Assembly: GCA_047495785.1 (NCBI GenBank)
Contig: JBLDXI010000021.1
Coordinates: forward strand, 2,046,001-2,110,000
Source of the DNA: Lepidodermella squamata
Taxonomy: Eukaryota > Animalia > Gastrotricha
Direction: 5' to 3'
Length of the DNA: 64,000 bases
The position numbers and the translations under genes are program-made. The notes beneath the pieces were generated by a model. It saw only the letters and a list, made by a program, of their open reading frames with translations. It made no database searches and was not told the DNA's origin. Shown here piece after piece: positions 7,501 to 64,000 of the stretch; position 1 is the stretch's first letter, and every line of letters starts with the position of its first letter.

Positions 7501-9520
7501 CCACTTTAAAAACGGCGCCATAAATCGACTGCGGCCGCCCTCGCAACTCCCATTGTATCCAAAATTTACACCTAATTACTTCTTAAACAAGGATTGCTAT
7601 AACCACTCGAGGCATGGTTCTATAATTGCTCTTTTACCTGGTTAATATAATTACTCAGGGTAGCAATCGAGCTTTGGCGTAATAAAACAATAACCAATCA
7701 ATCACATCATTATTTTCGAATTTTGTAACAACGCTTTAAAAATAATTAAAGTGCGCAAGCAGCATTTTAACTGTCAAAACTTATTTCCGTCGCGTTTGTC
7801 GCACTGCATACTTGAGAAGCGGATATACACGACGAGCCCGACATATCGAGGCAATGGCTGGTGATAGAACTGAAACCTATCGAGTTTATTATTACACAAT
7901 AAGTAAGTAGCCCTGCCTATCCTAAATTGTACTTTATTTTCCTTGCAAGCGCGCGTGCACCAAATCTCACCTGGCATATTGATGGGTTGCTAATTGCTGA
8001 TTAGGACATAACAGCCAGCAAGTGATGCTCACTTTATGCGCTATAAATTGATGCGTATGACAGGGTGATATTTGAAGATGCGCGCGAAACGCGTCCCACA
8101 GTGTAACGCGATCGCGCGATGCGTCATGCACCTTAATCATCATTTTTATCACAGTCGCCATAAAACAGGATACGGACTCGCCAGGTAGCATTTTATGATT
8201 TCTCAGCCACAATTTGATCGAACAATAAAGCTGCTATTATTGCGCGCTTTATTATCATCGGTCGATTATTACCTCCTTAATAAATGGGATCATGGCTCAA
8301 TACAGAGCCAAGGGCGGAATTTATTGGCATAATAATCGCGCATTGTTATGTAGCTCGCGTAAACCTATCTACTGATACAGCATGACCGGCGTTTTATTAA
8401 TACCCGTTTATCGGTATTATCGTTAATTTCGACATTCGTTCAAGTTGCGCCATTAAAAAGGCACCGCTTCTCGCTGCTTTTTTATAGTGTTTCGCGGAAG
8501 AACCAGATATATTGAGCGTGCGCTGACAGGTGCGTGTACTGAAGCCATGTTATCGAGCTACAATCGGCGTAGATATTTTACTACTAATTAGTGATATGGC
8601 CGCAATTTATAGCGCTGCTCACTATCGCGCGCAACATGCGGAACATGCGCGCTTAGATCCCGCAGTCGGGGCAAAAAGCCGCGAAGAGTTAAAAATTGAA
8701 GAGCTGTTTACAAATATCAGCAGGTAACAACCCGATATTGCGATGGCAATTAGAAGCGGTGTGTGATAGCAGCGATAACGCCGCAAAATCTGTGTAACAT
8801 AGCCAGTAATACTAATGTTATTATTGTTATTACCTGGTCTACTTGACATGGCAGCTTGAAGTCGCTTTTATGTAATATATTACTTTTATCGCGATCAACA
8901 AACGCATGTTTTATACATCTTAATTAAGTGCCAAATGTTCGCAAAACTGGGCATTTCCACGAGTATTTGCGCGCCGCTTTAATTGCCGAGACCGATACAG
9001 CATGATAGACACTTTGCTCGGGCAATAATGTATTATCAAGTGTCGAGTTGTGGTATTCGCAGCCTATAAATATCAGGCCTCTATTTTATGTTATTGCCGT
9101 CTACCTACTTTTATTAGCCTATTACGAACGCTAATACTCTCGCTTGTGTCAAGAAATGTGATGTGATGTTAATGAGGCCATTTGTTCTTCTCCCCTTGTT
9201 CTTACGCGCGAATGTAAAATAACAGCAAAGCGCCTTTTAACGCGAGATGGCCTCAGCACGACCGGTCTGTTTAGGAATCGACAACATGTAATAAAGGCGA
9301 GAGCGTGTTTTTCCCACCAGTTTATTGGTCCTGATCGCACTTTTCGATGTGTAGTAGTTAATCGGTCAATTAAGCGTCGTAATTTTTATTACAGTGATCT
9401 AATTAAGCGGCTCTTTGTTATGCGCAATTTGTTACAGCACCCATTATGACAGCATAATAGACTCCTTTACATTTTTTCATCTCAATTGATCGTTTTGTGA
9501 CTAAAATTACATCTCCCTAG
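4600..9520. promoter_or_regulatory. About 5 kb gene-free upstream regulatory region of NK7
   Basis: No credible ORF, in contrast to the 0.2-1 kb spacers elsewhere. Rich in TAAT/ATTA cores and NK-type sites: CCACTCGA 7369 and 7603, CCACTTTA 7501, TTAAGTG 6650 and 8924, TCAAGTG 9036. Confidence 0.5.
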
Positions 9521-9538
9521 ATATTACTGAAATTATTT

Positions 9539-61311: not shown

Positions 61312-63319
61312 TCACTCCGCCTTGTAGAAAAACTGACCAGCCCTAAGGCGGCGCATCCACTCTGATGAAAGCAAGCGACGCTCCTTTTGCACCTTGTCGA
61401 AAATTCCGCGATTTTCCTGTGCGCGTCGCATCAGATAAGGCATGACATCGAAAGTAGGCCCATAGGGGATGTACTTGTAGACAGAGAAACCAGCCTGGCC
61501 CAATGTGAACGATACCTGATCGCACATTCCCATAAGCTGGCCGAAACAGACAATTTTATCGTCCGGGTTGATGCCGAGCTCCTTCATTTTCAGAACCGCA
61601 TTTCTGACCGACTCTTCATTGTGAGTGGCACACATCAGTGAAACCTTGCCCTTGGCCCGGGTCTTCGCTGATCGCAGCAACTCCTCGAAGATTCGCACGT
61701 AATTTTCGGTGGTTTCGTCCGTGTTCGACCAGATTGGGTCGGGGTAGTTATACTCAGCGGCGCGAGCTCGCTCCTGTTCAAGGTACGCACCCCTTACCAG
61801 TTTGCAACCGAAATAGAAATCTTCGCGAGCAGACAGCGCCAAGTCAAGCTGAACCCTGCGCAAAGTGCCTCGCGTGTAGGCCTGATAAGTGTTGAAAACG
61901 ATAGCACTGTCCTGAAATCAGAGCCGAATTTTAAAATGGAAATGCTGGGCATAAAGAAATATTGCCTTATTGAACTGGCGCATCATTTCGACGGCAAGAC
62001 GGTTGATGGCCGGTTGGAAGTAACTCTGCTCGGCGTCGATCATAATGCGAACGTCACGGGATTTCGCATGCTCGACTATACGATTCAAACGCTTGATCAT
62101 GTTTTTGAACTGCTCGTCCATGTCAGGGTCCAGCTTCGGAATCAACGGGGCAAGCATGTTGAATTTTCTACCCAAACTATCCGTGTAGACTCTAACGCTC
62201 GGTAACGACAGAACTTTGTGAATGTCGACATTCATCAAATTGGACCATTCGAACATGTCAATTTTTCTGTAGAAAATAAGGTAATTTCTTATGGCTCAAT
62301 TCAAGATAAATAATTACCCTTCTTTCGTTTTGTCAAGCCATGTGAACCATTGCTTTGAATCATCACGAGATATCGGGATACCCATATCATTCAACCCCTT
62401 TCTGAACTGATACTCGGACATGGTTTGCATCAGGTCGTCTGGGTTCATGCCAGCACCAACCATTTTCTGGTAATAATTTTCGATACGGACCAACACCTCA
62501 GAGATGTGCATAAGGAGATCAGGACGTCCGAGCGCCGTAACTTTGATCGCAGCGAAGCCAGATGCTTTCGTTGCATCAGCCACGGCATTGATGCACTCGA
62601 TAAAATGATTCATGTTGTCATCACACGCTTTTTCGTCCTCGTAGACGTAGGTACGAGCTGAGACGACACCCTCGCTGATATCGCTAACAGAAGAGCGGTA
62701 CTGTCTGATTTCTGGAGAACTGTCCTTGTCTGCATAGAAAAATCAAGTCAAGTTTTATTTTTCCAGATATTTCTATGCGCTCACCATGTGTGCCATGCGT
62801 TGCCGATGTTGTTTCGACTTTTTTGTCGCCTGAAACATCCTCCTCAACACTGTAGTCTAGAATTGATTTGACACCGAATCGCCTGTAACGCTCAACCACT
62901 GGTGTAATCTCTTGAATATCGGCACCAGCGACAAAGTGACCGTAAACTGTTAACTGGAGTAATTTCTCTAGGATACGCCGACCAAGCACTTTTTCAGCCA
63001 GCGAGAATAGCTGCCGCTGATTCGCTACCAATTTCTCGTAAGAACATAGCCGAAAGACGAGAATCGCTCGAAGAAGTTCGAAATTTGATTTCGATTTGTA
63101 AGCCTCCTTAATATTCTCAAAGGAGAGATCAATTTGTTTGAATGACGGGTGGTCACCACCAGTGCCCGGCTTGCCACTAGCTACCCAATCAGGATGGACT
63201 TTATCATCTTTTTTCCACGATGCAGTTGATGACGCCGTCCGCAAGTGGACTGAAAGCAACTGCGCCGCTCTTACTCGGTAGTGATTCAACAAGACCAAGC
63301 CGCCAAGCTGACCAGGCAT
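61312..63319 (-). CDS. PRODH: Proline dehydrogenase, mitochondrial (PRODH1/slgA type)
   Basis: Exons 63319-62785, 62729-62318, 62266-61966, 61911-61312 (last intron GC-AG). Motifs YGHFVAG, SILDYSVEED, AIKVTALG, MIDAEQSYFQPAI, KLVRGAY, ATHN and VYKYIPYGP..YLMRRAQEN. Confidence 0.96.
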
Positions 63320-64000
63320 GAAAAACAAGTCGTTCAAGTAAAAGATCTAATTTTAATAATCGACGAACAAAAATTCTTATTCCAAATTTACAGTTACAAA
63401 TTATGATTATTGAATGGTACACAGTTGCATACAATCCTGGATACAGTAACGTGAACCATGAAACCGACCGGTCCGACAATCAAATAACGATCATCGAAAC
63501 TTATTTACAGTATAAGAACTAACAAGCGCAGGTTTGGAGAAATAAAGCAACACGTCGTGATTTGAAGGAGGGGCAAGAAGACCAATCAATCGCCACGTCA
63601 TCAAACTTTGCTTACTATAATAATTGATTCGAAACTATAACGAAGGTCTAATAGGTTATCACAAAAATAAGTAATCCAGCGAAACGCGCGTATAAAAATT
63701 AACGAGAGAAAGAAGATGTCTCTGTGCTGTACACCTAAATCCGTTTCATCACTGAACTCAGTTATTATATCGTGAAAACACACTCACACACCCTGAGGAA
63801 CAAAAATTGGGCGCTGTCGTCGATAAATCAAGCAGAAAGTTATTGCTCGTCTGAAGACAGACGCCACAACGCAGTCTAAAATAAGACGAACTAATACGAA
63901 AAGGGCAAATAAGTAATACGACACGAGTAGGTAAGCGATGAGTCTTTAGCAGGAACTCAGCACCTAATTTAGTAGAGCGTGTCCACGTCCGCTGGAAAAC

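Follow-up and report, generated by a model that had tools for sequence, protein, structure and literature searches.

Donor-less acceptors, leader RNA genes and leader relics point to spliced-leader trans-splicing in the gastrotrich Lepidodermella squamata

Spliced-leader (SL) trans-splicing is distributed patchily across the animal tree, and whether it had a single origin or several is debated. Flatworms, the proposed sister group of Gastrotricha, trans-splice with leaders whose terminal ATG provides a start codon. Here we analyze a 64,000-nt stretch of the gastrotrich Lepidodermella squamata (assembly GCA_047495785.1, contig JBLDXI010000021.1, positions 2,046,001 to 2,110,000; hereafter the window), a gene-dense part of a compact animal genome, in which many genes carry a candidate 3' splice site shortly before the start codon; whole-genome searches covered 121.2 Mb in 151 contigs. 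An earlier sequence-only reading had proposed that nearly every gene has such an acceptor, that these acceptors lack donors of their own, and that the animal trans-splices most mRNAs. Our results indicate that many mRNAs of this animal probably receive a short 5' leader by SL trans-splicing. This reading is well supported, albeit indirectly, by SL genes with donors, genomic relics of leaders, a leader on the PGAM mRNAs of relatives and the statistics of the acceptor sites. While the core of the proposal is thus upheld, its extension to nearly every gene or most mRNAs is not established, as roughly one site in three is weak and a replicate in 200 kb of neighbouring DNA was not significant.

To score the sites, we used donor and acceptor weight matrices trained on 21 internal introns of the window, which were curated by hand because automatic intron calling (open reading frame (ORF) joining, expectation-maximization) converged on noise and was dropped. 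The curated introns are 50-105 nt long, have donors of the GTAAGT, GTAAAT or GTGAGT type and end in CAG (ten), TAG (ten) or AAG (one), in agreement with the earlier remark that internal introns here often end in CAG. The AG and the ATG named for each of 20 genes were all found in place (20 of 20 each), the acceptor triplets were confirmed as 18 TAG, two AAG and no CAG, and all ten gene names that were tested agree with Pfam. The sites are listed below, with the distance between AG and start codon in brackets; a top AG is the highest-scoring AG within positions -70..-1.

9501..9520, plus strand: NK7-type homeobox gene, candidate acceptor, ATG 9539 (18 nt); 5.7 bits, top AG; homeodomain (Pfam)
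14715..14734, plus strand: UBE2Z, candidate acceptor, ATG 14747 (12 nt); 6.7 bits; a better AG ends at 14726 (20 nt before ATG), 8.8 bits
15970..15989, plus strand: TEX261, candidate acceptor, ATG 16001 (11 nt); 8.8 bits, top AG
16937..16956, plus strand: PGAM, best-supported acceptor, ATG 16990 (33 nt); 16.9 bits, shuffle p=0.003; aligned with the leader junction of relatives' cDNAs
18148..18167, plus strand: OGA, candidate acceptor, ATG 18185 (17 nt); 10.9 bits, top AG; NAGidase domain from residue 12
21188..21207, plus strand: SRP72, candidate acceptor, ATG 21230 (22 nt); 7.3 bits, top AG
23646..23665, plus strand: FAHD1, candidate acceptor, ATG 23689 (23 nt); 5.3 bits; a second AG 2 nt downstream (ends 23667) is favoured by the masked matrix
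24491..24510, plus strand: MGAT2, candidate acceptor, ATG 24574 (63 nt); 9.2 bits, top AG; 120 nt past the FAHD1 stop (24390)
27318..27337, plus strand: INPP5F (Sac domain), weak candidate, ATG 27401 (63 nt); 2.7 bits; one upstream ATG in the would-be untranslated region (UTR)
31639..31658, plus strand: HOGA-A, candidate acceptor, ATG 31672 (13 nt); 7.3 bits, top AG
33024..33043, plus strand: HOGA-B, weak candidate, ATG 33070 (26 nt); 0.4 bits, not the top AG
36000..36019, plus strand: NOP56, candidate acceptor, ATG 36084 (64 nt); 6.9 bits; masked matrix favours an AG 53 nt before ATG; upstream ATG in the would-be UTR
38694..38713, plus strand: Ly6-like gene, weak candidate, ATG 38718 (4 nt); -0.7 bits
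52910..52929, plus strand: RNF103, candidate acceptor, ATG 52951 (21 nt); 6.7 bits, top AG
48516..48535, minus strand: RNF38, candidate acceptor, ATG 48501 (14 nt); 6.8 bits; a better AG (9.1 bits) lies 48 nt before ATG
50595..50614, minus strand: AP3M, acceptor, ATG 50589 (5 nt); 9.3 bits; pyrimidine tract and TATAG 2 nt before the same ATG in a relative's genome
52108..52127, minus strand: AADAC-like esterase, weak candidate (AAG), ATG 52105 (2 nt); 3.7 bits; not kept in the relative, where the nearest AG is ~75 nt upstream
55604..55623, minus strand: ANK, candidate acceptor, ATG 55576 (27 nt); 5.3 bits
57597..57616, minus strand: HMX, poor candidate (AAG), ATG 57595 (1 nt); -4.4 bits
63347..63366, minus strand: PRODH, weak candidate, ATG 63319 (27 nt); 1.9 bits

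In 15 of the 20 genes, the AG picked by eye is also the top AG. Best AGs reach a median of ~6.8 bits over the 20 genes, compared with 7.7 bits for true internal acceptors scored by leave-one-out. Best acceptor scores are higher on the sense than on the antisense strand (Wilcoxon p=1e-4) and higher within -70..-1 than in the stretch -210..-141 (p=1.4e-3), and their mean of 6.39, against 3.70 +/- 1.22 in dinucleotide shuffles, was reached by one shuffle in 300. As a group, the 20 sites therefore act like genuine 3' splice sites, more than expected by chance, while the evidence for single genes is weak. The shuffle comparison suggested in the earlier reading thus bore out a group excess; with flanks this rich in T, few individual genes exceed their own shuffles.

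The same reading had seen no good donor upstream of the genes it checked. Indeed, the best donor scores 38-150 nt upstream of the sites (median 4.3) are at the level of random positions (3.8; p=0.6), and the sites are unpaired by this measure. ATG triplets make up 0.7% between AG and start codon and 1.9% upstream of the AG, a trend only (p=0.10).

Candidate donors of a leader were found in the ribosomal DNA (rDNA). The 5S genes of this species are located in the 8.46-kb rDNA units, and two paralogous small genes adjoin the 5S gene in the rDNA spacer, on the same (minus) strand:

L021:1029-1060, minus strand: SL-A, 32-nt leader ending CTAAG, then GTATGA
L021:1497-1529, minus strand: SL-B, 33-nt leader ending CTGAG, then GTTAGT

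Both leaders start with AAATATCTGCG. At up to 3 mismatches, the genome holds 507 copies of SL-A and 482 copies of SL-B, nearly all within rDNA units. In the predicted SL-A fold, the donor is paired in stem-loop I, followed by single-stranded AAUUUGAGG (near the U1 Sm site) and a terminal hairpin. The search for an SL RNA gene with leader, GT donor and Sm site, which the earlier reading had recommended, was thus successful as to leader, donor and copy number (about 500 each); an Sm-like AAUUUGAGG is present in SL-A, and none is clear in SL-B. Rfam gave no matches in the window and only 5S in the rDNA spacer. Across the whole genome, the best match to the Rfam SL1 family (RF00198) scored 26.7 bits, against a cut-off of 75, and matches (23-27 bits) occurred only in a 33-bp satellite. 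We rejected these matches as false, their source being a long satellite of ~33-bp units (..CTGTCGCTTGAAGAGAAA..) at L001 (G000:C29:3415414-3418513).

The spacer holds further elements. At L021:1793-1905 (plus strand), in the rDNA spacer of G000:C5, lies a third unit resembling a small RNA gene; it combines a perfect GTAAGT with a AUUUUUUG motif and a T-run. This unit, present in 486 copies, was the first SL candidate and was dropped because it has neither leader relics nor a match among metagenome contigs. At L021:836-862 and L021:1357-1384, the spacer carries two copies of a 28-nt box (AAACCACATGCAC.TGGTCATTGGCGAC), one just upstream of 5S and one beside SL-B; the box may act as a common promoter element. 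In addition, insertions of 1.5-6.5 kb, resembling long interspersed nuclear elements (LINEs) with a poly-G/C end, lie within the SL-B gene at L023, L024 and L025 (rDNA units of G000:C17 and C22); two divergent copies of a ~54-bp target piece flank them.

Both leaders also occur elsewhere in the genome, detached from their genes. We queried the genome with the 3'-terminal 16 nt of either leader, required the next base not to be G and counted places outside rDNA. At least 31 relics of SL-A and at least 26 of SL-B were recovered; in each, the leader breaks off precisely at the leader/GT boundary and other DNA follows. At the DNA level, ten or more different downstream sequences adjoin the leaders at this donor boundary, several of them common to both. 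In the ATAGGAGACG family, every clear copy begins with a leader (five with SL-A, three with SL-B). Used as a control pseudo-leader, the rejected L021:1793-1905 candidate yielded no relic place in the genome. Examples of the relics of SL-A and SL-B are:

C1:1542004, C7:1696225, C20:2103991, C42:1555579, C4:1680435, C32:680317 and C54:3855389: repeat families with the SL-A or SL-B leader at the head of their copies
C3:4498881: a further relic

The simplest reading of the relics is that RNAs, mostly of repeats, acquired either leader through splicing at the predicted donor, after which copies of them were reinserted into the genome. The relic repeat families are probably retroelements copied from leader-bearing RNA.

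Transcripts of relatives bear on the PGAM site. Spliced models of PGAM and FAHD1 were searched per exon, and the closest PGAM matches are cDNA-like contigs from Joint Genome Institute (JGI) soil metatranscriptomes. In a tree built on window exon 1 only, these cDNAs group with the window PGAM (clade support 99/97) and are separate from molluscs, annelids and flatworms. Four of the contigs (L026, L028, L029 and L057), from four samples and with three different 5' UTRs, share a 5' block of at most 24 nt that ends in CTGACTAAG and sits 23-31 nt before the ATG; a fifth (L032) has a variant block ending in TTTAAG. The boundary between block and UTR aligns with the AG at 16955-16956 of the window. 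The block shows that trans-splicing-like leaders occur on PGAM in the clade; it does not show the identity of the leader of this species. When metagenome contigs were scanned for the relatives' leader, one unrelated AT-rich contig came up. An exact 20-nt match to this leader, at L027:2863-2882 in an AT-rich metagenome contig of 3.3 kb, neither lies at the contig end nor is followed by GT. For FAHD1, a search with exon 2 among representatives found no close relative, the top match (55%) being an intronless gene on genomic contigs.

Genome contigs of a relative bear on the AP3M site. The gene order AADAC-AP3M-RNF38 is kept, at identities to the window of 36-50% for AADAC and 87% for AP3M. The AADAC-AP3M spacer measures 71 nt in the relative (L019:1572-1644) versus 265 nt in the window (50590-50855), and a pyrimidine tract ending in TATAG lies 2 nt before the AP3M start, within those 71 nt past the AADAC stop. 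The position of the AP3M acceptor is conserved in this relative.

Based on these results, we suggest the following model. Pre-mRNAs of the window genes would begin somewhere upstream of the acceptor. The spliceosome would attach a leader, donated by SL-A or SL-B RNA from the genes in every rDNA spacer, at the AG that closes the pyrimidine tract, between a few and ~60 nt ahead of the ATG, and would discard the upstream outron. Donation of the leader in trans and loss of the outron would explain why the listed acceptors lack donors of their own.

Several observations weigh against this model. The excess of acceptor scores over composition-matched shuffles is modest, with per-gene p values mostly above 0.1; six of the 20 sites (HMX, Ly6, HOGA-B, PRODH, INPP5F and AADAC) score below 4 bits; and 22 start codons roughly defined from ORFs in the neighbouring 200 kb show no significant acceptor excess (p=0.15 and 0.5). 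Together with the AADAC site, which is not conserved in the relative, these same points favour an explanation in which some trans-splicing takes place but most of the 20 AGs are chance occurrences in T-rich 5' flanks, transcription starting in the ordinary way close to the ATG. We regard this as unlikely, if still worth reckoning with, given the group statistics (sense versus antisense, and one shuffle in 300), site scores close to those of true internal acceptors, and the backing that the PGAM and AP3M sites receive from outside the window. The AGs might instead be ordinary cis acceptors of 5'-UTR introns whose donors are weak or lie farther upstream: the donor scan covered 38-150 nt, and it holds a few candidates at 5.6-6.3 bits (NK7, PRODH, HOGA-A and Ly6). 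However, introns here span 50-105 nt and upstream donor scores match random expectation. Moreover, with the upstream gene only 120 nt away in one case (FAHD1-MGAT2), and 71 nt in the relative (AADAC-AP3M), a promoter and an exon would have little room, and the 5' block of the relatives' PGAM cDNAs is identical despite diverged UTRs. We therefore consider cis-splicing at these sites very improbable.

The case for SL-A and SL-B as leader donors has its own difficulties. The SL-B fold has a strong 3' hairpin and no clear Sm site, and the folds of both genes are no more stable than those of shuffles. No near-identical transcript-derived protein of the species was found for AP3M or PGAM; exact look-ups (AP3M, AADAC and NK7) and homologue searches for same-species RNA returned nothing above 87% identity. 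With up to 3 mismatches allowed, the relatives' leader is absent from this genome, and its likeness to SL-A and SL-B, which lies in an initial CTGCGATT and a final CTAAG, is at chance level by local alignment, which is why the relatives' block does not identify the leader of this species. Finally, the relics are mostly multi-copy and could in principle derive from elements inserted in SL genes and cis-spliced from the SL donor. Taken to its end, this last point yields an account without any trans-splicing, in which the rDNA genes encode other small RNAs and the relics stem from LINEs that had inserted in these genes, used the genes' promoter and were spliced in cis. LINEs are indeed present in SL-B genes, the relics mostly belong to repeat families, and two single-copy relics are without a leaderless parent copy. 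This account has to contend with the ten or more different downstream sequences joined at the exact exon/intron boundary of two different leaders, with LINE 5' junctions that lie ~42 nt beyond the donor in the rDNA copies, not at it, with the leader on the relatives' mRNAs and with the acceptor statistics; we hold it to be extremely unlikely.

Returning to SL trans-splicing as the preferred reading, we infer that leaders are joined at these AGs in this species, with a confidence that differs among sites. Leader use is expected at the PGAM, OGA, AP3M, MGAT2 and TEX261 sites and probably extends to about half to two thirds of the 20 listed sites; at the HMX, Ly6, HOGA-B, PRODH, INPP5F and AADAC sites it is doubtful.

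The sequence-only reading had further raised the possibility of a dedicated acceptor code. CAG is found at none of the 20 pre-ATG sites but at 10 of the 21 internal introns (Fisher p=5e-4, for pre-ATG sites that were picked by hand). With position -3 masked, the matrix picked 12 AGs preceded by T, four by G, four by A and none by C, while CAG accounts for 16% of all AGs in these flanks. The contrast is not absolute, as acceptors of the CAG type precede two of the 22 ORF-defined starts in the neighbouring 200 kb. Because the sample is small, some of its sites are possibly false and CAG acceptors occur next door, we rate the contrast as an open lead with weak support. That outron acceptors follow a rule of their own, with TAG followed by a purine and CAG avoided, unlike half of the internal introns, strikes us as a rather improbable outcome. 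If true, such a rule would mean that the 3' splice site helps the spliceosome to separate leader-accepting sites from intron ends.

Start codons and gene arrangement were examined for the listed genes. The ATGs of OGA and NOP56 are supported by Pfam domains that begin close to the N-terminus, at residues 12 and 6, respectively, and AP3M aligns over its full length with homologues of 418 aa. Between 9500 and 39000 of the window, 13 listed genes follow one another on the plus strand. Among TEX261, PGAM, OGA, SRP72, FAHD1 and MGAT2, the spacers from stop codon to next acceptor measure 120-400 nt, and the layout of this run resembles an operon. HOGA-A and HOGA-B form a tandem pair of DHDPS-family genes (window 31672-34150) with one candidate acceptor per copy, the second of which is weak.

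A full-text literature search returned no paper linking gastrotrichs or Lepidodermella with spliced leaders or trans-splicing, and the L. squamata genome paper makes no mention of spliced leaders or operons (PMC11660948). If the present reading holds, published L. squamata gene models, 5' ends and any operon calls should account for the leader. Adding Gastrotricha to the trans-splicing phyla would provide a new point of comparison for the question of origin. An SL gene pair embedded in rDNA, combined with leader relics, could moreover offer a DNA-only route to detecting the process in unsampled phyla.

By analogy, the system would work like the SL trans-splicing of nematodes, flatworms, rotifers, tunicates and chaetognaths. 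With SL1/SL2 of C. elegans it shares a short leader that ends in GAG or AAG before a GT donor, the existence of two leader types, a candidate Sm-type site (in SL-A) with a terminal hairpin, linkage of SL genes to 5S rDNA, donor-less acceptors a few nucleotides before the ATG and tightly packed genes on the same strand. It differs from the nematode system in leader length (32-33 nt versus 22 nt in SL1), in the location of the SL genes inside the 18S-28S rDNA unit and in the listed acceptors, which are TAG where the nematode has TTTCAG; nor is there a sequence or covariance-model match to the SL1 RNA family of Rfam. The flatworms Schistosoma, Macrostomum and planarians, members of a related spiralian phylum, show the same type of process with leaders of ~35 nt; unlike theirs, the leaders described here end in CTAAG or CTGAG and supply no start codon. 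In starting with a leader that stops at the splice boundary, the genomic copies recall the SL relics of dinoflagellates, which are recycled cDNAs, and the association of LINEs with SL genes recalls SLACS and CZAR, the LINEs of trypanosomes that are specific to SL genes. In contrast to both, most relics of L. squamata belong to repeat families found with one or the other of two leaders.

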